From positions 20,708,001-20,772,000 of the forward strand of contig OZ038379.1 in NCBI GenBank assembly GCA_964036045.1: a stretch of DNA of 64,000 nt. Direction: 5' to 3'. Position 1 is the stretch's first letter. Every line of letters begins with the position of its first letter. A program made the position numbers and the translations under genes. The notes beneath the pieces are model-generated. The model was not told the DNA's origin, made no database searches, and was given only the letters and a program-made list of their open reading frames with translations. The stretch comes from Eutreptiella sp. 'Long Island Sound 2002' (taxonomy: Eukaryota > Protista > Euglenida). Shown here in pieces: positions 1 through 19,600 of the stretch.

Positions 1-470
1 CTCAAAAATCGAAGTTTTCGAAACTTGTTTTTTTGATATCGTCACCACTTAAAATGACCATCCAAGGTATGTAAAGCATTTTTTAGGCCGTATTTATGTA
101 GTTTTCACCCTATTTAGGGTGTGTTTGGCTTGGGGTAGATTCTCTGCGAGGTGGACTTGCCGAAGGCAATAGAATTGCCATTTTTCATCCAAAAATGGCC
201 ATTTTTGGGTCAAAAATGGTGCTGTTGGCCCTTGGATCCACAGTCCAGGACCCCCCTCACATACGGCTGATTTTAGACGGTATCAAGCCTGCATTCATGA
301 TGTGGGGGCCAGAATTTTTCCACTTTTGTAGGTCCGGGGAGGGGGGGGGGGAAACAGCAGAAAATGAACTCTTTATAGTATGATTTACCAAAAAAAGTGG
401 TAGTTTCATCTGTCGCTGGTTTGGGGATTTTTGGACCCGTATGGACCAAAATGTGCCAGCAGTGTTACTG
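1..470. repeat. Probable dispersed non-coding repeat element (T/A runs, G tract)
   Basis: Composition and motifs (ccaaaaatggccatttttgggtcaaaaatgg) resemble the repeat family at 24000-24900 and 51000-51900; no convincing ORF. Confidence 0.3.
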
Positions 471-1561
471 CTGCGTTGGACCCCTGCATTGGACCTTCAA
501 ATTAGATTCCTACATTGGACCACTGCGTCACAACCCGGGTATGTTTCACCCGTGCATTAAACTCCTGTGTTGCCCTCCTGCCCAGCCCCCCCCCCCCCCT
601 TCTGCCCTGCCCCTGGAACCCCTGCAGCACTATTGGACCAACTACATGGCCAGCGCTCAGAACTTATCCAACGCAAAATTGCTGCCATGAGCTCCCCCTG
701 ACATGCAAATGGGTTTGTACTGTTGGGCGACCCTACTTTTGCACCAGGCAGAATACAACGTACGCTAGCACAGGGCTGAAAATCTTTCCCATTCCAATAA
801 TTTTCCGCGATTCGGTGCTGGACATAGGTCGATGCATGCCATGCAGAGAGAGCATACACTGCTCAGCGTTGTATCCATATAGTGGTGCAATACCGCTTCA
901 AAGATCACCTGACATCTGTATCAGGACTGCACATTACGTTGCATCTCGCGAGAATTGACGAAGCACTTAAGATATGCCGGCAGCCTTAAAGCCGCAGGAA
1001 AGCCTGGCGTGCCAGCCTTTTTCTCTTCCCTGTCTTGCGCGTCTGGTCTCCTTTTTTCCCCTATTTTTTCGGCGATTTCTTTCAGTGCTCCGTTGGTCTA
1101 CCGCACATTCACTTATGCTTCACTATGGAACCCATATTTACAGCCCAAATTCAGCCTGAGCCTCTGGTTTCCACGGGAAGTGCAACAGCACCTCAAGCAG
1201 AAAATTGGTCTTCCTTTTGTAAATATGCATTGATGAACCTCACATGTGGAATATTGTTTCGTATGGATTTGGGCGGGAAACCGCCATGCATAAAAAAAGG
1301 AACCTGGCCTACCACGGCCCACACAAAAACTGGCCATCCAACCAATTGGACCTCTGAAGCCTGTCAGGGCGAAGGTGGGGGCACTGCCACAGATGTTGTG
1401 GCATCCTTTGCACATCGCAACAGATGTTGTGTGGACCAGGACAAGATGCCAACGTGCTGCAGCACTACTCTGTTTCTTTTGGAGGGCTTTGTGAGAGGCC
1501 CTGGAGATTGGACACAGTACAAATGAGACAAAACAGAACTGCCCAATGAAAATGGCGATAC

Positions 1562-4500
1562 TCATTCCGCATGCACCGTCAGAGTGGCAGACCTCCCGAA
1601 CACCTCTGGGCTGAGCACCTCCTCAGCAGTCGCAGGGGGTGCTATGAATTCTCCAAGGCCTGTGACCTGCGCCACATACGAATATGTGTGTGCGCCCTCC
1701 CAGACTCGCCCTGCAAACGCCTCAACCCGCTCGTCTCGGAGGTTGTCATGATCGTACCACCGCCAATAACAGCAGCGGCCGGCAGCAGGCGGCGTGCCCC
1801 CCAACTCCGGAGTTCCAGCCAAGGCCGGATTCAGAGGCTCCAGACAGGCCGGCAGCTTGTCCACAAGAGCCACCCTGTGCCGCACCATGCGGGTCTCAAG
1901 GGTCAGCGTGACCTCTATCAGGCGCCCAGACTTCAGCTTGTAGCCCTGGGCCGTGGTCTGCACGTCCTCGGGGTCCTGAAGGGCTTTGTACGTGCGCTGC
2001 ACGATGAAGCCTGCATCATGGGCGGGCAGAATGTTGCTCTTGGGCGCGTACTTCAACCCCAAGCGGTAGTACAGCCGCCCCGGCCCCACTTTGTGGATGT
2101 GCAGCGGTTGCGGCGCAGCGCCTGCAGTGTCCACAAGGTATTTCATGGGCACATCCGTGACCTTTGTGACGGTGCTGCGGCCCTTGTGCTCGTGGTCCGC
2201 GACGAGGGACGTGCTCAGCCAACTGTGGGCCGTGAACGCGGGGGTGGCGGCCTCATACGTGTTGAAGTAGCGGTCCACCGCCAGCAACGCAAAGACGTTC
2301 TCCTGCGTGTTGCCCCAGCGGCCCCTTTGGCGCACCCCCAACAGCCCCTTCATCAGCTTTGGGATGATGGCATTGGACGGGTCCATCACCTGCAGCGCCT
2401 CCAGCACAATCGCATCGGTACGCGGGCTTGAACGCAGGAGCACCAGGGTGTCCGCCCCCGCATCCTCGTACCCGGTGCAGCAATGCGCAGCCCCTGCGGT
2501 CTCCACCGTCTGATTGGCAAAATACTTCAGCACGCTCTGCACGATGGAGTGGGTTGCCTTGAGGGGACTGGTGCCGTGCACCGCCAGCGCCAGCCAGGCT
2601 GCAGCGTCGAGCCCCAACTTGTGCACGCCACCTGCCGCATTGTACAGCTCCGCCGCCTCCGACGCCATCTCCGCCTTCTCGAACAAAGACAACACGTAAC
2701 ATCGGAGGCACTGCAGCGTGCGGCGCGTAGACTCCGAGTACTTGTCCCAATGCGGAAAAGCACTGAGGTCCCGCAGCGCCTCAATCAGCCTCCCGACCGC
2801 ATGCGCGCTCACCTTGTGGCCCTTGCGCTGCACCTGGGCGAAGCAGTGGGCCACATGCAGAGTGACAAAGACGTCAGCTTCGGTGTCCTGGGCCCAGAAG
2901 CCGAAACCTCCGCACGGCAACTGTGCCTTCAACAACTTCTGTACCAGGATACTGCCCAGCGTCGTCAGCTCCGGATCTTTGGGGATGGTCGGCGATGCGA
3001 ACGCGGTCTGGATGTCCTTCAGTAACGCAAAAGCCAAGACCCTGGACGCCATGCTCTCGACGTACTCGAACGGGTACTCCACAAGATACTCAAAGGCGTC
3101 GGTGACGGTCTGCAAAATGGTGGAGGAGGACCCGATCTGCAGCCCCCCGTACGCGGGGTACACGTCTGCGGGCGGCTGCAGAGCATGCGTGGCCACAGCG
3201 CCGTCGGGGTCCAGTTCACCGTAGGCGGCAAAGGCCTCCGCTGTGGCCGGCGTCCAAACGGGGACCTCTGCATCGGCCGCGTCCGCCACGCCTCCGGCGG
3301 CGGCACCCACCATCTCCGCGCCGACCTGGACCTTGGCCTTGCCGGGCAGCACGGTCTTTGCCTCGAAACGCACTTCCAGGCGCTGCTGAGGCTCCAAATG
3401 GATCCGGAAGCCACCGACGCCGGGCCCCACCAGCTCCAAATTGGAGGTCCGGGCGACCACCGCCACATCGGCGGCACGGGACGTCTGGTTCTGGACCACG
3501 ACCGTCAACTTGGCGTGGTCCCCGACGTTCAGGAACCGCGGCAGCGATGGCCGGACCATGAGCGGCAGCGCGACCTCGACCGCGCTCTCCCCCATTCCGA
3601 ACGCAGACTGCGCAGTGCACGCGACGGCGATCACGCGGTACTTCGTGAGGCTGTCCGGCAGCGGGACCGGGACGGTACACGCGCCGGCGGCGTCGGTGCG
3701 GACGTTCCCGTGGAAGCACGCGAGGGCGTCGAAGTTGGTGCGCACGGCGATGGGCATGTCTGCGCCGCCGGGGCCACCCATTCCGTTCGCGGCCATGCCC
3801 ATGCAGCGGGCCATACCCATACCATACGCACGATAGCCACACTCGTCATAGATCTCATCTCCGATGGCCTCGAACAAGAGCTCGCGCCAATTCCGCGAAA
3901 GCAGACTCACCCTCGTGTCACAGCGGAATGAATGCCGCGCGTAGCCCTCTATGCGCGTTCCATCGCCGTAGAAGTAGCCTTGAGGGGTCGGCGAAATGAA
4001 GTACTCCGCGGCCTCAGGCTCGTCTTCGGGCATCGGATTCCGGGGGCACATGCCGCGGGCGAGCGCGAGCACAGCCTCGTCCACGACCCAAATCGCGACG
4101 TCGGCTGCAGCAGCCGGCGCCTTCGTGGCGGCGTTGTGCACCGAGACGGACACGTCGGTCTTCGACCCCGGCGTCAGATGTGTGGCCCCTGGTCGCACAT
4201 CCACCGTCAAACACTTGATCTTGTAGCTGATCTCCAAATCCATTCCCGCCTGGGCCCCCACGAGGCCTTCGCCCGTGCCTGAAGCGCTTCGATCCACCAC
4301 GACGTCCACATTCAATCTCTTTTTGGCACCCGGAATCCACTCCTCTTTGACGTCGAAGCGCAGGTCATGACTCCCGCCCGGCGGGATAGCAAAGCACTCG
4401 GTGTACAGCAGCCCGCGGCCCTGCAGCTGCGCCACGGCCTGGCACGGGTCACTCAGCAGCGACTGCACCGTCACCACTGCGCAGTCCCCGGCCTCGTAGC

Positions 4501-7500
4501 GCTCTTTGTTTGGGATCAGCTTCAGAGGCTCTGCGTTCTGGTCCTTCGCAGACGCACGCGGCAGCCGTCCCACGACCAAAAGGGACGCACTGCAGGTGTT
4601 GACGAGCCCTGTGGGGTCCGCCACTCGGGCCTCCAGCGTGTACTCGCCGCCCTCGTCGAACAGCAAATCGAGGCACATTGTACCCGGGGCAGAGGTGTAC
4701 TCCTTGACCCACCGCTCGATCACCTCCACATCGTTTCCAAATCGCTTCCTTTGAGTCGACGTGCACCGCACAGTGAGCGGGACGTCCGCGATGGCCTTGC
4801 CTGCGACGTCGCACACCACGAGCTCCACCTCCACTGACGTATTCGCCCGGGCCCACGGAAGGGTCTTTATCCCCACGTAGTACTTCGAGGGATGCACCGT
4901 GAAACTGGCGCTGGAGGACATGGTCTGGCGGTTGATGTCGGTGACGGTGCCGTTGGCCTTGACTTGAACGGGGTATTTGCGCTTTTGCGACGCGTTTGCC
5001 TTGAAGTCAATGCACAGGCGGTGCTGCCCTTTGGAGTTCGTGTTGCTCTTGTGCCGCAGCACTGGGCCCGAGTCATCGTCTTGAAAGCCCCGGAACCCGA
5101 AACAGCCCCAGACCGGGGCGTCCTGGAAGTGGAAGGCCGGCCAGCCCGCAGGGCTGAAGGTGGTTTTCTGGGAGTCCACGGTCCACTCGACGTTGGCCTG
5201 CGTCAGAGGGCCCCCGGCGAAGTAGCTGGCGTGCACGGCCACGATGGCACTGCCCCCCGTCACCAGCGGCGGGCCTGAGGGCGCTGTACAGGACACGTTG
5301 AACTCAGGGCGCCGGAATTCTTGCACCTGAAATTCATGGTAGTGATGGCCGCCCTCCCCCATTTCGCAGGACACGCCGTACCACCCCAAACCGCACTCCG
5401 TGGGCAACGGAATCTCTGCGTAGAACGTGCCGTACTCGCTCGTGGTGACCACCTGCTTCCAAATCGGCTGACCACTGCCGGGGTCGAAGCACTGAAGCGT
5501 TACCGGTACGCCGCCGGGGCTCCACAGTTCCACCAGCTTGTTGTCAGTGGTGGGGCGGCAGCCGCGGGCGATGCCTTTCAAATGCACGGTCTCGCCCGGG
5601 CGGTACAATTTGCGGTCGTCGAAGGTGTACAATGACATACCCTTGGCATACTTTTTTTCTCGCATTTCGCTGATGAGTGCAAAGCAGCAGTCATCCCCCA
5701 CCTTCACTACAATCAGGCAGTCACGTTGCGAAAGGCCATCGGCGCCGCGAGTGATCATGCCGTTGGCGCCGGTGGTGCCACTCCAGTTCGCGGACCATTG
5801 TTCCCCGTCACCATCACAATCGTACGGGGAGCCCACGACACCGTACGCCACTTCAGCACCGGGGATGGGCTTCCCAGTCTCCAGGGACGTCACCCAGACC
5901 ATATCCTCAGTCCTCGTCCGCAATGCATTTGCCGCCAGAGCCGTGGCCTGGACCCATACGGTGCTTGCCCTCAGGTCAGGCACGTAGCGGCTGGGGTAGT
6001 GCTCTGTGGCCTCTATGACGGGCGGCAAACTCTGTGGGGCAGGCGCGGGCTCCGTCACGTTCGGGTCGACAAACACGATGATGTTCCCCGCCGGGGCACC
6101 ATCCGGGCCGTGGTTCCGGAACGCACTCTTCAGGTCCACATGGACGATGGTGGGCACATCCGGCTCGCAATTCGTCGGAATGGTCCCACTGGCAACGGCC
6201 TGCCCCAAGCGCTTCAGTTCGTCGACGTAACTCTGGAGCGCCTCGTCCATGCCATGCAGGCCCTTCATGTACAAGTTCAGGTACACAGGCCACATCGACG
6301 GCTCAATGGACACAATGCACACGTCCACCCGTGGAACGTTGACGACCACCACCGAGTGGTCGTAGGGTGCGGGGGGGCCCCCTGTGGCATGGCTGATGCC
6401 ATTCGTGTTGGACTTGGGCACAACATCGGGAGGGGTCTTGCTCATGGGGTCCAGAACCCACATGCTCTGCAGGGGGCTGCACTCAGAACCGTTCACGGCC
6501 TTCTGTCCAGCGGCGTTCCCCAGCACACTGAACATCTTCGCAGCAGCCCCAATTTCACACTCCACCGTGTGGGACTGGCCCAGCCTCTGGCCGTAGACGT
6601 CCTTCACTGCGGCATCCACAGTCACCGTGTACTTGGTGCGGGCACGGGTGCGACCGCTGATGTTGACCTCGCACTCGGAAACGCTCAGTTCCATGTCTTC
6701 AATGGGGGGCTGCACGCTGATGAACGACTCCAGGAACTCGTCGACATCCAAAGAATTGTTGAAGGTCAGGCGCAACGGCGTCTGAGGGGGGGACCGCGAT
6801 GCCGCCTGCGGCCCGTGGGCACTAAGCGCCAGCCGATTGTACGTGCAGAACTCGCGGACGCTCGGCTCTGCACTGCACAACGGCCCCTCGGCGGAGGGCA
6901 CGTTTGGGCCGACCGTCAGAGTCCAGTTGGTCCCCTTGGCAAGGGCCTCGCACGGCTTCAGCAGCACGACACGCTCTGGGGGGGTCCGGGAGGTGCAGGC
7001 GCGAATACTCCGGGCCTCAGACACGCCGGCCTTGAGGTAGTAGGGGTCTGAGTCCAGGTGCTGGTGCACTTCCGCGGCGCTCTGGCACTTGAGGGGCACG
7101 GAGCGGTCTGGGCCAGACAACCGCAGCGCGGGGAACACTTTGGCGCCATCCATCGCTTGATCAAACACGAGGGCCATGATGGGCTGCGTGCCAGTGATAC
7201 CGCAGGGCAGAGACCGAATCAGCCTTGGCGTGGCCGTGGACCACTTGTTCTCAAACGTGGCCGCGAGCGGAGTCACCGCAGCGCCCAGCGCTTTTGTGCC
7301 TTGCTTCACGACCGCCGCATATTCCGTCGCTTGTGCGAAGCGGTACTTGGGCTCGAACATCAGCGTGCGGTCCCCGATCCATCGCCAGCGTCCGTCGGTT
7401 TTGGGGCTGAGCTCCACCGGCACCAGGAGCTCATCCACAGCAGCGACACTGGAAATTGGCACCATCGGGTGCGAAAACGTGATGGAGAAATGCGGCGCCA

Positions 7501-7861
7501 AGGAGACCTCCCCTTCCGGTGAGCATCGCACAACTGTCAACTGTCCACCCTCCGCTGTGGGGGCTACAGCAGCAGGTGCTTCATCAGTGGTCTCTGGAGG
7601 GAAAGGCATCTGCTCTTGTGCTGACGGCGGGGGCGCCGTCGTCGTTGGCCGGGGGGCAAAGTCTACTCCCAGGTCATGCGGCTCCCAAGTTGGAAGCCGC
7701 TGCTCCAAGTGCGCCTTTTCATCAGAGGTCAGGGTTGCAAAGCTCTGCACAGAGGTGGCTGTGACATCCACGTATTGGCCCACCATATCGTCGGAGGCAG
7801 GCTCTCGCACCGAAAGGAAGATGGCCGGGTTGGCCTCCTCAGTGGGATCACCATCATACAT
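1562..7861 (-). CDS. Bacterial-type alpha-2-macroglobulin family protein (Ig-like/MG domains, bait region, thioester-domain fold), single exon; thioester motif lost
   Basis: Uninterrupted ORF (1562..7897, likely ATG at 7861 after a pyrimidine tract and AG at 7877-7878). It carries A2M-family motifs TDRxLYRPGE-like 'DDRKLYRPGETVHLKG', 'EFRRPEF', 'VVDEAVLAL', 'VRTNFDALACF', 'VPLPDSLTKYRV', 'PRFLNVGD', 'GRWGNTQEN', and C-terminal 'PPATAEEVLSPEVFGRS'. The usual YPYGCxEQ position reads YPFEYVES. Strong GC3 bias. Confidence 0.92.
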   Translation of the reverse strand: MYDGDPTEEANPAIFLSVREPASDDMVGQYVDVTATSVQSFATLTSDEKAHLEQRLPTWEPHDLGVDFAPRPTTTAPPPSAQEQMPFPPETTDEAPAAVAPTAEGGQLTVVRCSPEGEVSLAPHFSITFSHPMVPISSVAAVDELLVPVELSPKTDGRWRWIGDRTLMFEPKYRFAQATEYAAVVKQGTKALGAAVTPLAATFENKWSTATPRLIRSLPCGITGTQPIMALVFDQAMDGAKVFPALRLSGPDRSVPLKCQSAAEVHQHLDSDPYYLKAGVSEARSIRACTSRTPPERVVLLKPCEALAKGTNWTLTVGPNVPSAEGPLCSAEPSVREFCTYNRLALSAHGPQAASRSPPQTPLRLTFNNSLDVDEFLESFISVQPPIEDMELSVSECEVNISGRTRARTKYTVTVDAAVKDVYGQRLGQSHTVECEIGAAAKMFSVLGNAAGQKAVNGSECSPLQSMWVLDPMSKTPPDVVPKSNTNGISHATGGPPAPYDHSVVVVNVPRVDVCIVSIEPSMWPVYLNLYMKGLHGMDEALQSYVDELKRLGQAVASGTIPTNCEPDVPTIVHVDLKSAFRNHGPDGAPAGNIIVFVDPNVTEPAPAPQSLPPVIEATEHYPSRYVPDLRASTVWVQATALAANALRTRTEDMVWVTSLETGKPIPGAEVAYGVVGSPYDCDGDGEQWSANWSGTTGANGMITRGADGLSQRDCLIVVKVGDDCCFALISEMREKKYAKGMSLYTFDDRKLYRPGETVHLKGIARGCRPTTDNKLVELWSPGGVPVTLQCFDPGSGQPIWKQVVTTSEYGTFYAEIPLPTECGLGWYGVSCEMGEGGHHYHEFQVQEFRRPEFNVSCTAPSGPPLVTGGSAIVAVHASYFAGGPLTQANVEWTVDSQKTTFSPAGWPAFHFQDAPVWGCFGFRGFQDDDSGPVLRHKSNTNSKGQHRLCIDFKANASQKRKYPVQVKANGTVTDINRQTMSSSASFTVHPSKYYVGIKTLPWARANTSVEVELVVCDVAGKAIADVPLTVRCTSTQRKRFGNDVEVIERWVKEYTSAPGTMCLDLLFDEGGEYTLEARVADPTGLVNTCSASLLVVGRLPRASAKDQNAEPLKLIPNKERYEAGDCAVVTVQSLLSDPCQAVAQLQGRGLLYTECFAIPPGGSHDLRFDVKEEWIPGAKKRLNVDVVVDRSASGTGEGLVGAQAGMDLEISYKIKCLTVDVRPGATHLTPGSKTDVSVSVHNAATKAPAAAADVAIWVVDEAVLALARGMCPRNPMPEDEPEAAEYFISPTPQGYFYGDGTRIEGYARHSFRCDTRVSLLSRNWRELLFEAIGDEIYDECGYRAYGMGMARCMGMAANGMGGPGGADMPIAVRTNFDALACFHGNVRTDAAGACTVPVPLPDSLTKYRVIAVACTAQSAFGMGESAVEVALPLMVRPSLPRFLNVGDHAKLTVVVQNQTSRAADVAVVARTSNLELVGPGVGGFRIHLEPQQRLEVRFEAKTVLPGKAKVQVGAEMVGAAAGGVADAADAEVPVWTPATAEAFAAYGELDPDGAVATHALQPPADVYPAYGGLQIGSSSTILQTVTDAFEYLVEYPFEYVESMASRVLAFALLKDIQTAFASPTIPKDPELTTLGSILVQKLLKAQLPCGGFGFWAQDTEADVFVTLHVAHCFAQVQRKGHKVSAHAVGRLIEALRDLSAFPHWDKYSESTRRTLQCLRCYVLSLFEKAEMASEAAELYNAAGGVHKLGLDAAAWLALAVHGTSPLKATHSIVQSVLKYFANQTVETAGAAHCCTGYEDAGADTLVLLRSSPRTDAIVLEALQVMDPSNAIIPKLMKGLLGVRQRGRWGNTQENVFALLAVDRYFNTYEAATPAFTAHSWLSTSLVADHEHKGRSTVTKVTDVPMKYLVDTAGAAPQPLHIHKVGPGRLYYRLGLKYAPKSNILPAHDAGFIVQRTYKALQDPEDVQTTAQGYKLKSGRLIEVTLTLETRMVRHRVALVDKLPACLEPLNPALAGTPELGGTPPAAGRCCYWRWYDHDNLRDERVEAFAGRVWEGAHTYSYVAQVTGLGEFIAPPATAEEVLSPEVFGRSATLTVHAE

Positions 7862-7923
7862 TATGGACAAGAGGTACTTGCAGAGGAAAACAGACACTCA
7901 GAAAGTGAATGCAAGGTGTTGAT

Positions 7924-8270
7924 GTTGTGGTGACTTTCTAATGGGCTGGCCACAAAGACTAAACCCAGCCCACCTTGTGGGCTGTGGTGTTGTGAAATTG
8001 ATGATTGACGCAGCACCAAAATTCATTCAAGACACGACCTAGACCACTGCAAGGTTTCCAGGTTGTGAATTTTCTTGTGGGCGGACCACCAAAGGCTCCA
8101 CCACTGTGTGAGATTATGGTGTTGTGGACTTTCTGAAAAGCGGACCACCAATGTGTTCCCAATGAATGCCAGTCTGTGACGCTTGTTGTTAATTTTCTTC
8201 TGCGTGAACCACCAAATTGTCCCACATCATGGCAAGGTTGTACAGTCCCCAAGTGTTTGGCCCGAGCCTC
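7924..8270 (+). repeat. Degenerate ~52-73 bp periodic repeats (GTTGTG...CCACCAA), probably an eroded protein-repeat (ankyrin-like) coding remnant
   Basis: Units start at 7924, 7989, 8062, 8121, 8185 and 8237. They translate as VVKLMIDAAPK, VVNFLVGGPPK, VVDFLKSGPPM and VVNFLLREPPN, with frameshifts between units. Confidence 0.4.
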
Positions 8271-9179
8271 CGCTGCCAGTTTCATGGGAGCACATGTTTG
8301 CAACTCTTGTACTTTTGCACACACACACACACACATCCCTGTCAGGCATCTCCAAACTGTTGGGGATGCAGCCTAGGTGCACTGATCCGACATTCACATC
8401 ATCCCTGCGCCACCTCCTTGGGTTCCTCCGGTGGCATGGGGTGAGCAACACAGTATGGTGTTAAAGTTGTGGCAGATAGAAATTCTGGTCATGCTCATTG
8501 GGGTTGCCCCATTCCCAGGCTCATTGACCAAGCGGGACCAAAATTGCTCCAAGGGGTGGGAGTGGCACGGAGGCATCTCCGCTCCTAGCTTTATTGTACC
8601 TCGACGTTTCAAGGAACCACCCTCCACCAGACTTTCAAGCATTTCAGGAAGACCACATCTTTTATTTTCCACTATTCCTCCGGTGTCGGCTAGCCACCAC
8701 ACTGACCTCTCCCACATCGTCTTGCACAAACCCACACTCACTCAAACCTTTGGATGCTAGTGTCACATCCACTTCATCCTCGCATTCTTCATCCGAGTAA
8801 TACGAGTCACCCTCCCCATCCACCCACTTACTGTCCGCGACATCTGCCAAACTTTGCAAGACACTCGACACCTAGGCCTCCGCACCGCTCCGTGCCAGAT
8901 TCGCAACTGCCAACAATAGCACCCACGCTACAGCCTGCAATCTCTATGTATCCTCTCCCGTCTGCTGAATGAACTTACGCACCACCGCATCCACATCCAC
9001 ATCATAAATTGCCTTCATCTTGCGCAACCTCTCCTTCATTTGGTGAATCACCTGCTTCTTCCGGATTCCAAACCCTCTCCACATCTCCTACTCCGTGTCG
9101 CCTTCTCCTCTTCTTCCTCTCATTAGGGGGCCGAAGTACTTTACTATCCTCGGCTTCTCCGATCTTGAGCTCCCTGATG

Positions 9180-10330
9180 TTGCATCGGATCCAGAGTGTC
9201 CACCACTGCGTCGCTCCCCACATCCTATACGCGACCGAGAATATGCCGTCCTTTCTCTTGGGAATCGGCGCCTCCTTCTGGCCTAGAATATCAATGAATG
9301 TGTTGGGTGTGCATACGCCAGTGCTACGCTGGGCATCTGCCATCCTCCCATGAGCTATAGCGGCGGCCCTCTTGCGCCTGCCGCCCACGCTTGTGCAGCC
9401 CCACACCCGCAGTGTCCTAGAATATCAATGAATGTGTTGGGTGTGCATACGCCAGTGCTACGCTGGGCATCTGCCATCCTCCCATGAGCTATAGCGGCGG
9501 CCCTCTTGCGCCTGCCGCCCACGCTTGTGCAGCCCCACACCTGCAGTGTGCGCATGCCATCGGAGGGCATGCTTCTTTTCTCGTGCCACCAACTCAACCA
9601 ACTAGGCCTCAAACTCGCTAGGGGACTAGAAATTATGTGGGACATTCGGGTTTCCCGCCTTGCTCCTCCACTCTACGCCCACGGGTATGAGCCACCTTTG
9701 GGCCATGCACCGACATTTTGCACTTGCACAGCTAGGCTATTGTTTTCGCTCATGAAGATCAACTTCCCCAGACCATTTCTGTATGCACTCCAAGCTTCAC
9801 CGATGGCGCAACAGGTCGGACCCGGATAACACTGCTAACAGTAAGTATTCCATTTCTAGCCACGTGAAGTGCCGTTTTTGCACCGTGATGTCATAGATGA
9901 CGTCAGATGGCGCATATTGTATCCATCGGCCACCTCTCCTCTTTTTCAGCTTCTCCAAACTTCTCGCGAATACCCAATCTCACTCCTGGACCACCAGTTC
10001 GATGACCTTCGATTTCTCTGCCAATCGAAGTGCCAACAACAACTTCTTGACTAGCCCTTCATAAGAACTTTCTCTTGTGATTTGCAGCAGCCTGCTCTCA
10101 ACTGCTTCTCTCAGCGCAAGCCATCCCTCGATCTTCGTGTAGCCCACGAAAGTGTGCATTGCTCCCACATATCCATCCCTCTTCTCCTTTTCCAATCACG
10201 CCCACATCACTGACGCGTAACTGCGTCGAAACCCCGCATTGTCTTCGGCTGTACAATCCTCCAATCTTTTCTGCATCCTCCTCGCTTCCTCAATACCCCA
10301 CCCACGTAGTCACCTGCTTCCAAACTCCTT
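9180..10330 (-). pseudogene. Tyrosine recombinase pseudogene (stops and frameshifts)
   Basis: R...HxxR...GGW...Y catalytic pattern is recognisable across frames. The C-terminal extension 'LGQKEAPIPKRKDG...MWG' parallels 'LAPLQLPWPESEG...VWG' in the second copy. Confidence 0.6.
9282..9549. repeat. 134-bp tandem duplication (2 copies, about 1 mismatch)
   Basis: cctagaatatcaatg...ccacacc(c/t)gcagtgt at 9282-9415 and 9416-9549. Confidence 0.9.
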
Positions 10331-11399
10331 GGCCTGAAAAGCCCAGTGCTTTCGGTTGTAGTACCTACATGGTTCATTCACGGGCACTTAGGAGTCTTGC
10401 CACGTTTGTGCTCTTGTTTTAAAATGCCTACGCCCATTTAGCTTGGACAGGTCTTGAGTGTCTCCCATCCCCTCCCTTAGCGTTAGCGGTACCTCTGCCC
10501 ATTCGCGGGCAGTCAGAACTCACTGAGCTAGAAGATTCCAATCTTGATGTCACACTACTTACAAACAACGACACGGTGGACGTGCTAGATGCGCTGGACG
10601 TGCAGTTAGTGAAAACAAACAGATATATCAGTCAGTATTACCTTTGTCAAGGTTTCCATTCAAATTCAAAACCTCTATTCCCATGCGGAACATCAAAACA
10701 CCTACACGCATGGTATAGCGCCAAAATGCTCAAACAACGACACCTCGCCCTCCACGGGTGAACGGCGTGTTTATTCAACAAACCTTCGTACCCATTACTT
10801 GTGTGGGTGGGACAAGAAAGATTAGGTGACGGACCTAAACGAAGTAGTGTGAGTGCCGACAATTGTACTAATAGTATATGGTGCAGCTAAAGAGGAAAAG
10901 GTCCCAGTAAAATTCGAACCACCCCACACGGCGCAAAGCAATGTGTTAAACATGTGTGATCTGCCTATTGGGACATGGGCAAACGTTTAGGCAACAATCT
11001 ATGGGGGCGCCCTTGCACTGTGCGCTACTTGTTAGACCAAGTTCTCCCGAAAGAGCCCCCAAGCATACCCCTTCCAAACGCCCTTGCATCATTGCCGCCT
11101 CACGGCCATGTCCGGCTGTAGACCATGGGAGACCTCCTTCGGTGGGGGCGAGAGGTGGTCCATCTTCCACGAATGGGGCTGGGAGGATGGACCCGGGGGT
11201 GCTGGGTATGGCCGTCCATCATAGCCTGGCTGCCGACTGTATCGGGATGACGGCATGGTACGTCTTGGCTAGCACGAAGGATCCTTGGCGTTCATCAAGC
11301 CCATGAGGTCACCTTCGATTATAGTACTTGGACGTAATACAACACTCGGAGAGGATGCTAAATTGTCCCTCGGCCTAGATTATGATCCTGGAGTCCAAC

Positions 11400-11480
11400 A
11401 TCAGCCATGCCTGCTCGGGGTCCCCATGATGGGGAGAAAACAACATGGATACACCACCTCTGCCTTCTCGAGGTCCCATG
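11400..11480 (+). repeat. Copy of dispersed 'CACCCCTGCCTTCTCGGGGTCCCC' repeat family
   Basis: Two degenerate units (cctgctcggggtcccca; ccacctctgccttctcgaggtccca), related to 12463, 36760-37135, 53440 and 63670. Confidence 0.55.
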
Positions 11481-12098
11481 GTGGGGAGAAATCAACTTAG
11501 AAAAGAGCGGATGTGGTAGAAATGAGCAAAAAACAAAGTGTGGAAACGGGTGGAAATGAGTGAAACTAGGTGAAAATCCTAAAATGCCATATCCCCAATG
11601 TGTAAGAAGCATAAAAACCTACTCTCAAACAACAATGATGCCCCTAGTATCGCAAAGTACGGGTCTCTAGGACGGCCACAGGACCAAATAGTGCTGCGCT
11701 TGCACTGCGCTAAGTGTGCCCCCTATACGCACATCCCAATCCCATGCAGCCAACTTTAATAAGCGGACCCATGTGCAGGGTCACACATCAGATGCTAGGT
11801 GGTTTTCTCCCTTCGTCCCCGCCTAGGTGGCATTGCATGCACACGCACATAGTGCGCACGCAGTACATAGACATTCCCCCATTTTCAACGTCGAAGTGGA
11901 GTTGTGCTACGCCTTGTCTCATTGAAGTGTCTCCGTTATCTATCTCCATGCATCCGCCAGAGGCCCCCTTTGGAGGGAAGGGGGGCTGCGGCCCCTCCTT
12001 TGCAATTCACAAAGAGTCGATTGCCTTGTTTGCACCCATTCCAACCCGTAGGATCTCTAGAATCATGCATCATCATGACATATCTTTTTCTTTCTAAG

Positions 12099-12435
12099 CT
12101 GCGAAATTGTCATTTGATACAAGAATATATTCCAATGATGATGACCAAGATGGATCCATCGCAATACAGCAAGACAGAAGGTGCGTTACCATCCCTTGAT
12201 ATTGATGGCGATGGAGTGCTAGGTGGGAGTAATTTTATGACCAAGTGTTCTTGCAGAATGCGTCAGAGGCTTGGCAACATAGTGTTTCATGCCCTTGAGG
12301 CAAAGGACTGTGGGAATGTCTTGCTATATGATTTCATCAAAGGCGCTTCAGTGCTCTCCGACGGGACTCTGCAAGAGAGGTTGGCCTTCTGTTTCAAGCT
12401 ATTTCACACCAAAAGGAACCGCACCATTCCTATGC
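12099..12435 (+). pseudogene. EF-hand (calcineurin B-like / neuronal calcium sensor type) fragment, degenerate and truncated by a repeat
   Basis: After an AG acceptor at 12097-12098: 'SLDIDGDGVLGGSNF...IVFHALEAKDCGNVLLYDFIKGASVLSDGTLQERLAFCFKLF', matching the CBL/NCS 'LS.L..GT.EEKL.F.FKL' pattern. EF loops are degenerate; no clear donor site. Confidence 0.55.
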
Positions 12436-12462
12436 ACCCTGTTGTCTTGGGCAAAACTGAAA

Positions 12463-12523
12463 TGGCTATATCACCCCTGCCTTTTTGGGGTCCCCAAAGC
12501 GAAGAGCAATCGCAGTGGTTGCT
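12463..12523 (+). repeat. Copy of 'AAATGGCTATATCACCCCTGCCTT' dispersed repeat
   Basis: Near-identical core to 37115-37135 and 63670-63710. Confidence 0.65.
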
Positions 12524-14625
12524 TAGTGTAATATTGGTCGCGGGCATCGTTGGCCGAAAACAATGGCCCACGTGCGCCCGGCGCACTAACTTTCCCTCTA
12601 ATGGTATCTCTGCTTTACTGATGTTGCCGCTGTCATGAACCACACGTTCCAACCATCAATCACGTTGTGTCATGGGGGTTGTCACCCTCATTTGTCACAC
12701 TAGAATCGTGTTGTGCACACACAGAATCTTCAGGTGCCCAAATTGGATTTTTGACTGAAGACCCACATGGTCTTATCTGTGGTGCAGCAGCCAGGGTCAC
12801 ATGGGTGCAGATCGGCCCCGGCTCAGCAAGAGGAGTTGTACAGAATTCAAGTGTTCAAGCGAATGCAGCAATGCTGCTGCCCCTCAAAACAATGGGGACC
12901 ATCACTGTGCGCACCCCTTGAGTTCAAAGCAGGGCCTGTACAAATTATATATCAGGCTGCAAATCTTTCGATTAGGAGAAAACCGCCGAACAGTCTCAGG
13001 AACTATATACAAGGGGCATGGCTGCACGCATGCAACACAACTTGTGGTCACAGTTCTCACTCAGTGTGTAAGCCCCCTGTCCCAATGAATTTCTGGCTCA
13101 TCGTATGGGGACCGGACACGGTGGTCACTCGTTGCAGAGAGGCACACCCCGAAAAAGGCACCAGCACAAGGCTGCACATGACCCGCCGCTCGTGTGTTTG
13201 TTACAAGGCTGAGTAGCCATAGGTGCAAAAAAAAAAAAAGCAGTGAGGAACTGAAATGCTGTCGCTGCCAGTGAACTAGCATGGGTGAGACTGGAGTGGA
13301 AATGTCCGCGCAAATGCTTACTGATTGCGCAAGCGCGTCTGTGCCCTGCTTCATCCTACGTGTGAGACAACGCGACATAAACTGTCTCCATATCCCACAC
13401 GCTGTGCAACACGTAGTGTGCGGGCTGCAGGGAAACCACCGGTAGCCGTGAAGCAGGAAGTGCCCACCACACCAAGGGCCAGGCACAGTGTACGTTTCGC
13501 TGCAACAGCGTGGTTGTGGAGGCAATTGACTGGCTGAGTGAACGAGTGGCCAAATGGCTGATTGATTTGGTGGTCAAATGGGTAAATTACTGTGTCACAA
13601 CAATTGCTGTGGCGGTGGTGTTCCCCACACGCCAAAGTATTGCTGTATGCACACATACGAAGTGCAGGTTTAGGGGTGGGTTTTAAAAAAGGTTTTGCAC
13701 CAGCGTTGCCACAGCTTTGATAGTGCAATGAAGGGCATGAGAATCAAAGTGCGTGTTTCAACTAGTGAACCAGGCATTGGCCTTGGGAGCGCCGGGCTGG
13801 GGGCGGCTGGGGGGCAATGCCGGTCTTCCTCTGCTTCAAAGGGACCAAGCAGGGTGCATCGCTGAAGCCATAGTGCTGCTCCAGCTTGCACAGTGATGTG
13901 CCTACCCACGGTGGGGGGGGCAGAGACCCACGCCACCCGGACTTTGGGGGAAACCCAGGGACCCAAAAACCGCCGTTCCCGGTCATTGGCATCAGCTCTG
14001 AGCTTTTTTGGCTTCAAGGTCAAAAGTCGGCTTGCTTGGCACCGCTACAGTGCTGTCGGTTGATGCTGCATTCTTGGCCCCCTCAAACTGTCAGTCAAGT
14101 GTAAATTGGGTCTCGGAAATTGGCAAAAACCTGGTGTCCCCCCCCGTCTGCACAGACTTGACTGGCCGTCATCCAGCATCTTAGACGTCACCTTCAAACC
14201 ACCATCAGCCCATGCCCTCAACATTTGGTGGCACAGGCATACTGTACAATGCGACCGCACAGTCGTGTGTACTCGTCGGACAGATGCTGATGCCCAAGCG
14301 ACGTAATACCCCTTCCGTCATGAAGCAGACCCCACGCTCCAAAGCCTAACATGGTCAAAACCATAATCGAGGGCTGGGTGGTGCATGGTACAGGGATAGC
14401 ATCAGCGCCTGCATTTTTTCAAGGTCATGCATGACGCAGGATAGAATCGACGCCGTGTTGGATCATACCGCATGCGGTGCGACGCAGCATGAGTAGAACA
14501 CAGGGTTAGTGTGTGCCCTCAGTTGGGCGCGGACTGGTTCGTCGTCGGCTGGGAGTTAGCCACAGTACCCGCTTCCCTTGGCTGCATGGAATGCGTGCGG
14601 GTACACGAGAGGTCTGATGGGTTAC

Positions 14626-14819
14626 CAGGCAGCCAGCCCGCTGGACTCGGGTTAAGGCCCGTGTGTGGGGACAGAAAGGGACGATAAGGTTCGTCGGTCA
14701 TGAAGCTCAGTGCAGGAGTCCAAAGGCGTTGTTGTTCTGCAGAGAAAATTTTGGTCACGTCTTCAAGATACTTTGGTCCGATAACTTTCTCTTGCTTGGC
14801 CCCACGGCGGCAGTGCGTC
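14626..14819 (-). CDS. Candidate exon of an unidentified gene
   Basis: AG acceptor (14820-14821) and GTAAC donor (14625) bracket an open frame 'THCRRGAKQEKVIGPKYLEDVTKIFSAEQQRLWTPALSFMTDEPYRPFLSP...' (194 nt, phase 2 to phase 1). No family recognised. Confidence 0.3.
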
Positions 14820-16488
14820 CTAATGTACGCCACCCCATTGCAGCCCATTGCAGGCGCACGGTGCCGTGGGATGCACGTACTCTCCACTGGCCTTGCACCC
14901 CCTCCCACATCTTTCCACAGGCGTGACGTCGGAATATAGGGCGGAGGACACAGGGTGTGGGTGATTGAAATGGTGGACTTGTACAAACTGGCACACATGT
15001 TGTCCGTGTGAGTTTGTTCCTTGCCCAATGCACCAACACACAACACACGCAATGAGGAAACGCAAGGTGTGAGTCAAGACGACGTAGATTCATAGCGATG
15101 TGGTAATTGTCGAGAGAAACTTACAAAATTGGGATGGCCGCATGGAATGTTGCGGGTAACATCCGAACACTGACTTCTCGATGACCGTCCTGCGTCACAA
15201 CTACTGGTGACCTCTCCAGCAGGAAGCGGGGGGGGGGGGGGCGAAAACCGGGGGATTCCGGGCTCAATTGACTGGACCATCAACCAATCACCATGAAAAC
15301 CGGCGCCGACGGAAGGGCCGAATCGTCGAAAAACGTGTGCCCTGGCCAGCGATGCTTTTCTGGACCCCCGCGTCCCATTTTCATTTGTGCGGAATCCGGG
15401 TCAACTCCGGGGCCGTCCCAGTGGCTTCAGGGGTCCAGTCGATTGAGCCCCCTTCGAAGGAAGGGGGCAGCGCCGGCGAGGGAGCTCTACCGACACCCCA
15501 ACCCCACTTCCCGCGATGGTAAATCCGCCTCCCCCCGGGTGTACGAAAGGCCCTACTACCCCCGGTGTGCCCGCCGAGGGGTGGATGGGGCAAGAAGCAT
15601 CCACCTCCCCACCCCCCACCGCAATTTCAGACGGAAAAAAAAAAGAACAATGGGTCCATCCACTGCACTTCGGGAAAGCAGAGGGATGCTGATGACCGGC
15701 GGGCCCGTGCGCATGTCCGGGATGATGTCCGCCATTACTGGGCGCCCACCTACACCGGGCCACATTCGGCCCATTCCGTCGCCTCACGGGAAGCAACGAC
15801 TGCATCACAGGAACCTCGCTTTTACACCACCGGGGGGGGGGGGGGGTGCCCAAAATGAGCAGAACCGAATTCCATAGGGAAGGGGTGTGTGATACATATG
15901 TGTGAAGAAGGACGGCATCGGTCAGACTTAGGCCCGATCGGAGAGCGTCTGAATCCCAATGCTGGTGCTCTTCGCAAGCTGATCCCTCGAAATGATATAA
16001 TACACGCACGACGAAAGATGCATTCCAAGGCTTTCCTGCCATGAACAAATGTCGCAACCTTTCTTGTCACAAGGATCACCTCATGGTCCACAAAATAAAT
16101 GGCAACAATCCTTCCATACCACCCGAACAATGACATGACAAACTCGTGACTAGGCCGCCACTCCAAAAAGGGAGGCTTGTACAACATGTGTGCAGACCAT
16201 AAATTGTAAAGACCGAGGCTGAATGATTATAATTACGGTTTGTTCTTGTTGGAAAACAAAAGGGTATTTATTCAATTGTTTGAGAAATTGGTATCAAGAT
16301 GTGGATCGCGCGTTTGGGGGTAAAAAGATGTGCTCTGAAATCTCGCACTCTACAGGTATGCACACAGCCAATCACCGAACGCACTGCCAAAATGACCTGC
16401 AGACACTTGCTGTGCTGTGGGCACAATGCCCGGCATGACAATGCCATCGCTGACAAGCAAAGGGCGTGGCAGGCAGGGGTGCCCTTCA

Positions 16489-16611
16489 TCATCGAGGCAT
16501 CTCCATATGTTGGCAGACGAGGCGGCCAAACTCAGAGCAGGGGACCTCCTTAACGCTGGTTTTGCTCTGCAACTTCAGATCGAATGTGTAACACCCGTTG
16601 TCAATGGTCCT
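16489..16611 (-). CDS. icd: IDH-like last exon ([12 protein letters not shown]...[19 protein letters not shown])
   Basis: CAG acceptor; matches Icd C-terminus TVTYDF...EVKCSEFG; TGA at 16489-16491. Confidence 0.85.
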   Translation of the reverse strand, partial: RTIDNGCYTFDLKLQSKTSVKEVPCSEFGRLVCQHMEMPR

Positions 16612-19600
16612 CTGCACACGGAGAAGTGCCCTTGTGTGGGAATTTCAGGGAAAGAGAGTCGGCGCCAGGCCCTTCCATAAGGGAGAGGCCAGGGAATGGG
16701 GACCGCACATTGGCACGTATGCCTGGCGCCTACCATACCGTTCCCCCATGCAGTGCGCATCACCACCACATTGCACACCTCCCAACCCTCTCCCTGCCTG
16801 CCCTTTGTGAGTCCTGTCTGCACATGCCTGAACCTCTCTCTTGGTCGGAGCACACCTGCACAGCCTGTGCCACCATTGCAGCCGCCTCACTCCAACCGAT
16901 CTGCTGCAGCATCATGGAACCCGCCAGTATAAGACCACTCGGGTTCACTTTGTCGAGTCCTGCATATCTGAACATTGACAAAAGATACTTCAAAACGTAA
17001 CTTGAAGGCGCCATTCCTCACGCGACAGCATGGGGTGGGCCACTCAGCATACTGCATACCCTCTGAAAACGGCGTCAGCGTCTTAAACCGGAGAAAAGGT
17101 GAAGCATATTTCCGGAAAGCCCTTTGGCATCTCCTGTCAACACTGGACTTGATGACTTCTTGCGCGCGGAGATGTTCGGAGGAAGTCCCTTGGGGGCAGG
17201 TTTTCCGTAAAGCACGTGGAACACCGTCGAAAGATGTTCGCCGGGATGCATTTTCACTGCAATGTTCACAGATGAAGGCCAAACAGCGGTCATTTGGTGT
17301 CTCCCAGCGCTAATGCAATTCTGACCCTTTATGTGCTGAGAACTGCAAAATGCACTCGTTCTCATGGATACTCTTTCTTTGTGTTGGTCACCACTTTGCA
17401 ATGCCCAATGTGTCCCGTTTGAATGCTCGCCTGGGGGTCTCGCGGATGAAGATGGCTTGGCAACGGTGCTCGTAGCTACGGGGGGTTCAGACGTGAGGTT
17501 GCGCCTGCATTTCCAGGATTCAGTACTGGTGAACAGGGCGAACCTACTTTTTTGGAGGCAGGGATTCATGTGAGGGTACATCACAAGGCAGGCATGTGGG
17601 CAGCCTCCGCCCATTGGGAGGTTGTGTGGTGCTTGACATGAACCCCTGCTCGTGAATCCGCCCGTGTTGCAGGCCGCCGGAGCACGTTTAAATCTACCTG
17701 TAGTCTGGGTTAGCACTCAGTATCAACGGGTAAATGCGACGTCTAAGAGGCTGTGGAGGACCCATCCAGTGCGAAGGGGGGCTTAGCCAGGGGCCAATAT
17801 CGCGAGGGGGAATTTTCGCCATTTGGAAACCCACAAATTTGTCCACAGCACACGCTTGAAAAAAGGCAGCGTATGCAAATGGCACAAGGCAAAACCATGG
17901 GCGGAGTTGGATCAGCAGATGCGGATGCGGAGTTACTTCATCTACGGAGACCTATGAACCATTGCACAAGTGCGTTTCAAGATCCAGCAGCATTCCTTTG
18001 GGCATCAGGCTGAAAGGAGCAGCAAACGACGGCACTGCAGGCAAAGGGATTGCCGCTCCTGCAGCACTGCATCAGCCCCACCGGGGACCACTGGGATCCG
18101 CTCTCAGTAGGTTTATACCTAATCGCATCCGCACCATCTTGGGGCCCGGAGGGCCCGGTGGGTGGAGGGCCGTTGGCCCGGTAGAGGAGGGCTGCGGGGA
18201 GAGGAGGGGATTGGCCGTTGGACTGGAGGAAAGGGGGGGGGGGGTTGGCAAGTGGCGTCACTCCACAGCCACTGCGCCACCCAGCGGTGACAGCGGTTGC
18301 CCCGTGGGTGGCAATTGTTGTGTTGTACGTTGCAGTTCTGGTTCAACCGGAAACCACAACTCAGTTCAACAGCTGCATCCAAAAGTGTCCCAGTTCAAAC
18401 CAACTGCCAATATCACTGTTGAGCAACCATGGACCATGGGCCATCGACCATGGGCCATGGGCCAACCCATCAGCAGGCGGACCTAAAGCGAGAAATGGCA
18501 GTCTATGCACACTCATGAACAACAAAGGGCGTGCGCTACAAACACTGGAAAGATATTTCTCGTGGTGCCTCGCCGAAACACTCAATGCAGATCAATGGGT
18601 TCAGGGAGGGGGGGGGGGGGGGGGGAGGGGTTGGCGGATGGCGGATCGCCGTGACCTGAGATCTCTCAAAAACGGAAGCGCATGTGACGGCCTTGACGAA
18701 GGGCAGCACCAGAGGGCCCAACACACATGCTCTTGCAGGACAAATGTCCGCCAGTTTTCTAAGCAGCGAGAGCCTCCCCTGGCAATCCCCTCCCCTGCAG
18801 TGCCACAATGAAGCCTGTTGCAGGCGCAATGAAAATGTGCCGAAAATGCCGTCTGTTACGCCGCTGTGCGGCTCAGCAGCACAGGCCAAAGGATGAGGGC
18901 ACCGGGGCCTTGGCCCTCCATGTGAAGAATCGGAAGGGCTGGGGCTAGAACAATGGCGTTGTGCCGGGACAATGCACACCTTGGAGCGGTGCCATGGATG
19001 GCCTCAAATACGGCATGTCCAGTTTGGAAATTGTAGTTGCCGCACGGAGACATGCCAAGGCCGCCCACTTGTGCCGCCAGGGCGTGGGTGATGTACGCGC
19101 CGTTCAAATTCATAGTAACAATGACATCAAAATCGCTCGGACGCAACATGCTCTGGGACCAAGGGGCCAACAGGAAAGCAGAGGCTGTACGAAGCCAGAA
19201 CAGGTTCACGGTTCAGAGGAGGAATGGGAACAACGACCCAATCCTTCAGGGGCAGGTGCGCTGCACAGCACTGTACTGTCCGCAGCAATACTGTGTTGCA
19301 CTGTACTGGAGTGTACCGCACTGCACTGCACTCACTGTACCGTCCCATCCCCTACCATACAGGATTGAATTGTACTGGACTGCTGCAATGTACGGCACTT
19401 TACCGCACTGCACTGTACTATCCTGTACTGTACTGTACTGTACTGTGCTGTGCTGTACTGTACTGTACTGTACTGTCTTCTGGTGGTGGTGCTGGTACTG
19501 GCCCCTCTGGCACCACTTGCACCTCTTCCGGTGCCGTTGTACTGTGAAATTTGCGTACGTTTCAGTAATCAATATACTGGGAGGTATGGTAGGCCAGTGC

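Follow-up and report, generated by a model that had tools for sequence, protein, structure and literature searches.

Type I bacterial alpha-2-macroglobulins (A2Ms) such as Escherichia coli YfhM (ECAM) and Salmonella A2M are described in the solved-structure literature as periplasmic lipoproteins of ~1,650 aa that have a functional thioester. Type II bacterial macroglobulins, for example, Pseudomonas aeruginosa MagD and E. coli YfaS, are reported to have the macroglobulin fold without the thioester motif CxEQ (PMC5764988, PMC3735191). On the eukaryotic side, a Dictyostelium COG2373-like protein, CPRas2, is a published precedent (PMC2430557). A precedent of a different kind comes from dinoflagellates, in which spliced-leader-tagged retrogenes are known (PMC6050394, PMC5585692, PMC12014239). 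Here, we set beside these systems a gene found in a 64,000-nucleotide stretch of DNA (the window) from Eutreptiella sp. 'Long Island Sound 2002', contig OZ038379.1, positions 20,708,001 to 20,772,000 of the forward strand. It is a nuclear gene of this euglenid alga, lying inside host DNA between split host genes. A first-pass annotation of the window had proposed that it is a bacterial gene that reached this organism by lateral transfer. We consider it probable, instead, that the gene is an inherited, retroposed and intact macroglobulin of bacterial architecture, a member of an old protist branch, that has lost its thioester.

The gene is intact, and its architecture is that of bacterial COG2373/bMG10 proteins and not that of animal A2M/C3. 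The first-pass annotation was right about the open reading frame (ORF), described there as uninterrupted over 6.3 kb and as still intact: an open frame of 6,300 nt, with 2,099 codons and no internal stop, runs along the minus strand from an ATG at 7861, the first in the frame, to a stop codon at 1562-1564. Upstream of 7861, the frame stays open as far as a GTG at 7897. The peptide strings quoted in that annotation are all present in the translation. Pfam finds the domains of the protein in canonical order (Big_5, MG2, A2M_BRD, A2M, bMG10), each above its gathering score, as follows.

1562..7861, minus strand: macroglobulin coding sequence, 2,099 aa (ORF list and translation; matches the ENA gene call P0121 exactly)
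6566..6811, minus strand: Big_5 bacterial Ig-like domain, residues 351-432 (Pfam E 3.4e-15)
5324..5632, minus strand: MG2 domain, residues 744-846 (Pfam E 6.3e-14)
4061..4525, minus strand: A2M_BRD bait-region domain, residues 1113-1267, with a variable Met/Gly-rich stretch after it (Pfam E 3e-08; translation)
3458..3715, minus strand: A2M domain, residues 1383-1468 (Pfam E 5e-16)
1604..2011, minus strand: bMG10, the bacterial-type C-terminal macroglobulin domain, residues 1951-2086 (Pfam E 2.7e-26)

The animal-type features that we looked for, the A2M_recep receptor-binding domain and the complement-type thioester domain (TED) signature, have no Pfam match at E up to 0.01, and NCBIfam returns zero matches for the protein. 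UniRef entry P0001 is identical to it from residue 237 onward, and its 90% cluster contains this locus and its own fragments only. An AlphaFold2 model of residues 1380-2099 (mean predicted local distance difference test [pLDDT], 84.8; predicted template modeling score [pTM], 0.72) has as its top Foldseek matches 4u48, 5a42, 4ziu, 4ziq and 4rtd (Salmonella A2M and E. coli ECAM; E 5.8e-34 to 1e-31), and CD109, C5 and A2ML1 follow as more distant fold matches after the bacterial A2Ms. By sequence, YfhM and Salmonella A2M are likewise the nearest solved structures (E 4.5e-23). The euglenid protein shares the MG7-CUB-TED-MG10 layout with these type I A2Ms (PDB 5a42, 4ziq, 4rtd and 4u48), but it is ~450 aa longer, lacks both their anchor and their thioester, and reaches only ~20% identity in the fold alignment. 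The scaffold is complete by translation, Pfam and model, with the bait-region domain, the variable linker and the thioester-domain fold all present.

Where do the closest relatives of this protein lie? After the window's own fragments, a word-index search yields only proteins of ~2,030 aa, bacterial or unlabelled, the named ones being from Anaerolineae, Caldilineaceae, Myxococcota and Acidobacteria. BLASTP against most of the best bacterial matches gives 33-36% identity over 95-100% of the query (~1,000 bits in HMMER). When a single genome of each prokaryotic species was scanned, 464 relatives were found, of which the best 80, from Chloroflexota, Acidobacteriota, Myxococcota, Acidimicrobiia, Planctomycetota and others, are all 30-36% identical. 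As a comparison group, we used the ~2,030-aa A2Ms of those five named taxa (COG2373; Big_5, bMG3, MG2, A2M_BRD, A2M, thioester domain and bMG10). The euglenid protein shares with them its domain order, its length and colinearity over 95-100% of the query; the earlier assignment to bacterial-type A2M, not animal A2M/C3, is borne out by this colinearity with Chloroflexota, Myxococcota and Acidobacteriota proteins together with the Pfam order. In an alignment of the gene with 14 bacterial proteins, mean column identity is 57% across the 15 sequences, and 330 columns are invariant, the N-terminal PEGE(I/V) arm included. In a tree of the bacterial loci, the euglenid protein forms a long branch about equally far from all bacterial proteins and therefore gives no sign of a young transfer from a particular donor. 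A pairing in that tree with L031, a metagenome-assembled genome (MAG) labelled only "bacterium," and with Xenobia and Burkholderiales MAGs was rejected as a long-branch effect, because L031 moved inside the bacteria once protist sequences were added.

Those protist sequences came from an exhaustive representative search, added because the word-index search sees only proteins of similar length. With residues 900-2099 as the query, it gave 14,206 matches at E up to 0.001, the best of them Euglena gracilis EG_transcript_3979 (EukProt; P0123), a 715-aa fragment with 57% identity. In a FastTree phylogeny of 151 rows (the query and the best 150 cluster representatives), the query and E. gracilis group with support of 100; with P0188 and P0251 added, the support is 98, and an enclosing 17-row group has 96. 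The 17 rows, together with 31 bacterial proteins of labelled taxonomy, were analyzed with IQ-TREE under LG+C20+F+G4 by posterior mean site frequencies (PMSF; 48 rows x 777 columns, unrooted). All 31 bacteria are split from the 17 eukaryote or unlabelled rows at 100/100 (ultrafast bootstrap/SH-like approximate likelihood ratio test [SH-aLRT]), and the same 100/100 attaches to the query with E. gracilis and to these two with Sulcionema and P0251. The terminal branches of the euglenid gene and of E. gracilis measure 0.86 and 0.73, respectively. The group includes the following members.

P0188: the diplonemid Sulcionema specki
P0135 and P0154: Naegleria lovaniensis genome proteins, on contigs of 778 and 314 kb
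P0189: Willaertia magna (KAL9653554 is listed for W. magna)
P0141: Sappinia pedata, an amoebozoan
P0129: Cavostelium apophysatum, an amoebozoan
XP_044543987, XP_044553805 and XP_044553821: N. lovaniensis accessions in the group

Based on these results, we infer that the gene was inherited within Euglenozoa and was not captured recently; we hold this evolutionary reading, overall, with good confidence. Despite its shared layout with the ~2,030-aa bacterial A2Ms, the protein is only 30-38% identical to them and stands on the opposite side of a branch supported at 100/100. The proposal of lateral acquisition by this organism thus gives way to a homologue in E. gracilis at 57% identity and to a 100/100 eukaryote group (Euglenozoa, Heterolobosea and Amoebozoa) apart from all sampled bacteria. 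The first-pass annotation had itself suggested a phylogeny, and grouping within a eukaryotic clade is the outcome that it had named as contradicting its claim. That the protist clade as a whole goes back to an ancient bacterial origin is plausible, given the 14,206 matches of the wider family, the direction and date of any such origin being outside the reach of an unrooted tree. A literature search on macroglobulins in Euglena or Naegleria returned nothing relevant beyond the Dictyostelium COG2373-like protein; CPRas2 differs in carrying an inserted GTPase domain (PMC2430557), and we liken it to the present protein by description only. As side observations, the heteroloboseans have several paralogues (N. 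lovaniensis P0135, P0284, P0285 and P0154; W. magna P0189 and P0286), and two adjacent N. lovaniensis models, C9374_013412 (1,190 aa) and C9374_013413 (891 aa), have the look of a single gene that the annotation has divided.

The Naegleria, Sappinia, E. gracilis and Sulcionema proteins have a Pfam architecture identical to that of the euglenid protein, and the comparison within and beyond this group brings out two losses. The ~2,030-aa bacterial A2Ms that were inspected have a hydrophobic membrane anchor, and most have the thioester CxEQ, whereas the euglenid protein has neither. The anchor occupies approximately residues 15-40 in 13 of the 14 aligned bacterial relatives; the euglenid N terminus is hydrophilic, with a highest 19-residue Kyte-Doolittle mean of 0.68, and aligns downstream of it. 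No full-length member of the eukaryote group has an anchor (highest 19-residue mean, <1.2), and several protist members have in common an N-terminal (I/L)xxREP-type motif at the place where bacteria have IRLSEG. Judged from these alignments, loss of the anchor looks like a character common to the protist clade. The thioester is another matter, since nearly all group members keep CxEQ and the euglenid protein has YVES in its place.

3053..3076, minus strand: former thioester site, residues 1596-1603, YPFEYVES, where relatives have YPFECSEQ or similar (alignments)

Across the family, YPxxCxEQ is found in 100 of the 120 proteins listed, the window's own fragments excluded, and CxEQ in most of the 80 genome loci. 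The motif reads CVEQ in E. gracilis (YPFDCVEQ), CTEQ in Sulcionema, CCEQ in Naegleria (YPFECCEQ) and CSEQ in Willaertia, and YVES at residues 1600-1603 of the euglenid protein is therefore a lineage-specific loss. Because its own branch keeps the thioester, this loss is also independent of that in the type II A2Ms. Has the rest of the protein decayed along with the motif? Among 203 C-terminal columns that are at least 90% conserved in the other 23 aligned sequences, the euglenid protein keeps 176 (87%), and E. gracilis keeps 160 of the 184 that its fragment covers (87%); Cys1600 to Tyr and Gln1603 to Ser are thus 2 of only 27 departures. Given this retention and a branch length similar to that of E. 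gracilis, the protein appears still to be under selection. Separately, about 15 of the 80 bacterial loci (L004-L083) have lost the thioester Cys or Gln (e.g., YRYDSADEY and YPFESSESI), so such loss recurs within the family.

Why does the gene have no introns? The spliced leader joins an mRNA by trans-splicing only. A genomic copy of the leader fused to an untranslated region (UTR) therefore points to the reverse transcription of a mature mRNA, and such a copy stands immediately upstream of this gene.

7881..7907, minus strand: spliced-leader relic, CACTTTCTGAGTGTCTGTTTTCCTCTG, 27 nt in sense orientation; its core 13-mer is single in 64 kb
7862..7880, minus strand: former 5' UTR, 19 nt long, separating the relic from the ATG (sequence); trans-splicing today may use the AG at 7878-7877 as its acceptor

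The published euglenid leader, Eut-SL, is the 28-nt ACACUUUCUGAGUGUCUAUUUUUUUUCG (PMC3621762). The first 16 nt of the relic match leader positions 3-18 exactly, and the five differences are transitions, all in the T-tract end. Downstream, the relic passes directly into UTR-like sequence and not into a GT intron start, and the distance to the start codon may be set against a mean euglenid 5' UTR length of 21 +/- 25 nt (PMC3621762). From this, we infer that an mRNA capped with the spliced leader was reverse-transcribed to give the present copy; the gene would be without introns because it is a retroposed message, and the first-pass annotation's use of intronlessness as a sign of foreignness falls away. 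The resemblance to the dinoflagellate retrogenes is that, in both cases, a DNA-encoded leader remnant directly precedes an expressed, intron-free gene. The differences are the leader and the lineage, which here are euglenid, and the absence of a poly(A) relic at this locus. Our literature search found no report of spliced-leader-tagged retrogenes in euglenids.

The gene is transcribed, to judge by 100% identical sequence in RNA-library contigs that end at the 5' UTR, the contigs being unable to prove transcript ends. The sequence is present in 12 runs from 7 studies, and 4 of the runs are estuary metatranscriptomes, which suggests that the alga is marine or estuarine; at 57% protein identity, it is distinct from E. 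gracilis. A run under a third organism label contained 14% of the words sampled. Contigs of four runs were compared with window positions 3000-8999. Those of two estuary metatranscriptomes and one presumed RNA run match the genome at 100% identity and cover a large part of the ORF with some gaps, and none from these three runs extends upstream of 7877 within the compared stretch. One metatranscriptome contig stops at 7877 and carries at that end 7 letters that disagree with the genome sequence, an ending that would be expected from trans-splicing at the AG at 7878-7877 but is suggestive only. Thus, the expression that the first-pass annotation wished to see checked is supported by identical RNA-library contigs, and spliced-leader addition to the transcript is no more than hinted at by these letters. 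The fourth run, of a kind not on record, covers the whole 3000-8999 stretch, and one of its contigs crosses the 5' border of the gene (7348-8791). At the other end, contig L001 from the Joint Genome Institute (JGI) (sample 3300017366, 2,677 nt) is 100% identical to and colinear with window positions 784-3460 and holds the last 632 codons and 778 nt past the stop.

784..1561, minus strand: likely 3' UTR, at least 778 nt (sequence present in the independent JGI contig L001)

A contig of run X1, of a kind not on record and probably DNA, joins 6791 to 7330 and so skips 538 nt inside the ORF, a length that is not a multiple of 3. Such a join could arise from misassembly or from an allele or copy that carries a deletion; it was seen in none of the RNA contigs.

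The surroundings of the gene are those of the host. The ENA contig that bears it (L002) is 1.27 Mb long, and over 17.86 kb its only difference from window positions 1-17860 is a 1-nt gap (99.994% identity), which must lie outside the ORF because the translations are identical. As the first-pass annotation had it, split genes flank the ORF, with exon pieces on both sides. A 55-residue piece of an isocitrate/isopropylmalate dehydrogenase (Iso_dh; profile positions 146-199 of 348) lies at approximately 26559-26840 of the window on the minus strand, ~19 kb upstream of the gene. A 95-residue piece of an H+-pyrophosphatase (H+-PPase; profile positions 196-286 of 645) lies at L002 25533-25895, ~7.7 kb beyond the window start. 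Both are isolated exons of split genes, which fits an intron-rich eukaryotic locus. The GC content of the ORF is 0.63, compared with about 0.50-0.53 in the flanks. At third codon positions (GC3), the ORF has 0.78, and the two neighbouring host exon pieces that were measured have 0.76 (Iso_dh) and 0.65 (H+-PPase). The ORF is thus GC3-rich, as the first-pass annotation said, and this richness fails as a sign of foreignness: because the neighbouring exon pieces resemble it, the value is ordinary coding composition for this genome.

How do other explanations fare against these observations? A recent, private transfer from a bacterium of Chloroflexota or Myxococcota type, with the gene intron-free because it is young, would account for the bacterial architecture, for the bacterial identity of all top word-search matches, for the missing introns and for a GC content above that of the flanks. 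We nevertheless regard it as highly improbable. Identity to every bacterial protein is only 30-38%, against the 57% mean column identity of the 15-sequence alignment; E. gracilis, at 57%, is closer than any of these, and a diplonemid comes next; bacteria and eukaryotes part at 100/100; and GC3 is like that of the neighbouring host exon pieces, with the leader relic accounting for the missing introns. Shifts in composition at the ORF borders might likewise suggest a contaminant or a chimeric assembly join, but the contig is 1.27 Mb long with split host genes on both sides, the 5' border is crossed by contigs of other runs and the 3' border by the independent JGI contig. With these spanning contigs, a leader relic at the 5' border and a homologue in E. 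gracilis, contamination or chimerism is very unlikely, to the point of being scarcely credible. A subtler alternative is that one ancient transfer from a bacterium to a eukaryote was followed by spread from eukaryote to eukaryote, in which case the euglenid copy would not descend vertically from an ancestor within Euglenozoa or Discoba. In its favour, the clade is known from scattered lineages (Euglenida, Diplonemea, Heterolobosea and some Amoebozoa), and inside the group the boundary between Amoebozoa and Discoba is blurred, with weak deep branches. Against this, the euglenids and the diplonemid group at 100/100, as the species tree predicts, the heteroloboseans also fall together, and the sampling covered the best 150 cluster representatives only. 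On balance, we find such a spread unlikely, though deserving of consideration.

Two further alternatives concern the relic and the fate of the copy. Could the leader-like 27-mer be there by chance, or derive from a spliced-leader RNA gene or from a repeat, next to a gene that has been intron-free since its bacterial origin? The lack of a poly(A) relic, target-site duplication or parent copy would fit this, but a 16-nt exact match in sense orientation, 19 nt from the start codon, stands at a typical euglenid 5' UTR distance (PMC3621762), the 13-mer core is unique in 64 kb, and the relic runs into UTR-like sequence and not into a GT intron start. We therefore judge coincidence to be quite unlikely. 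Retrocopies are often dead on arrival, and one could also picture a retropseudogene that has lost its function and its thioester and has not yet acquired stop codons; the thioester Cys and Gln are gone, and one DNA-run contig has the 538-nt skip at 6791-7330. This is distinctly improbable. The 2,099-codon frame is open, and E. gracilis is matched in the share of conserved columns kept (87%) and, approximately, in branch length. The leader relic, which is neutral, has taken on 5 changes within 27 nt, whereas the ORF has remained without a stop. A large part of the ORF is covered by 100% identical contigs from two estuary metatranscriptomes. Our preferred reading, an inherited and retroposed gene, has several points weighing against it. 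The search for a poly(A) relic yielded one candidate only, an A-rich patch (1018-1083); the best flank-to-flank repeat is a 10-mer, compatible with chance, and so no target-site duplication is seen; and no intron-bearing parent copy appears in the 90% cluster. The leader relic is, for these reasons, the single line of evidence for retroposition. Nine of the 17 rows in the eukaryote group are without an organism name, and the tree is unrooted. Two amoebozoan rows come from transcriptomes of bacterivores, and contamination is conceivable for those two, as it is not for the Naegleria and Willaertia genome contigs. All of the RNA evidence consists of assembled contigs, which are silent on transcript ends and strand and leave room for DNA carry-over. 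The absence of a signal peptide was judged by hydropathy and alignment only, the group members are known from sequence alone, and the mechanism is argued by analogy. The A-rich patch, for its part, lies on the minus strand ~480-545 nt past the stop, inside the present 3' UTR; it is a possible, though not demonstrable, decayed poly(A) tail.

On the reading of an inherited, retroposed gene, we envisage the following history. The ancestral gene would have been passed down within Euglenozoa as part of a deep, anchor-less protist clade. A spliced-leader-capped mRNA would then have been reverse-transcribed into a genomic copy, any introns being removed thereby, and in this lineage the thioester Cys and Gln would have been lost while the rest of the scaffold was kept. 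Because the protein has no signal peptide and no thioester, neither classical secretion nor covalent binding is expected. Thus, we posit that it may stay inside the cell, or exit by a nonclassical route, and that it could act as a steric, noncovalent protease trap or as a protease-binding scaffold. An intracellular, noncovalent protease trap or binder seems to us the most likely function by analogy, with low confidence. The working analogy for a noncovalent mode is with the type II A2Ms MagD and YfaS, in which CxEQ is reported to be absent (PMC5764988). MagD is reported to work in a membrane-associated multi-protein operon complex (PMC5764988); no such operon context exists in a eukaryote, and MagD is likened here by description. 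To generalize further, and with considerably more doubt, we speculate that an old and as yet undescribed family of macroglobulins of bacterial architecture, without an anchor and probably intracellular, is common to free-living protists of at least two eukaryote supergroups, Discoba and Amoebozoa, most of its members having a live thioester. Such proteins could be an intracellular protease trap or an immune tagging arm against prey or intracellular bacteria, and the gene studied here would be a retroposed, thioester-less, noncovalent derivative of that family.

What do these observations mean beyond the single locus? An intron-free, GC3-rich ORF whose word-search matches are bacterial or unlabelled mimics a fresh horizontal transfer, and this is a caution for transfer screens. 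Here, the retroposition of a spliced-leader-capped mRNA and the thin sampling of protists explain the gene better than a fresh transfer does, and screens of euglenid genomes should check for leader relics first. The family itself has been little noticed: the reviews that we consulted list it for animals and bacteria, and the macroglobulins of bacterial architecture described here make up a deep clade of protist proteins that lack the bacterial anchor. This clade, once rooted, bears on the origin of eukaryotic thioester proteins. Finally, E. gracilis, with the thioester kept, and this euglenid, with the thioester lost and the rest conserved, constitute a natural experiment on what a macroglobulin is able to do without covalent capture.

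The remainder of the window adds few minor features. A scan of stop-to-stop frames by GC3 for more host exons recovered only one 84-codon frame, because the exons here are too short for the approach. Eight long ORFs in the flanks have zero Pfam matches and therefore are probably not genes. Upstream of the macroglobulin gene, a (GT)n microsatellite, passed over as a repeat in the contig comparison, lies at window positions 8310-8345, and a tandem duplication of two adjacent 137-nt units, 98.5% identical to each other, lies at 9279-9549, ~1.4 kb from the gene.

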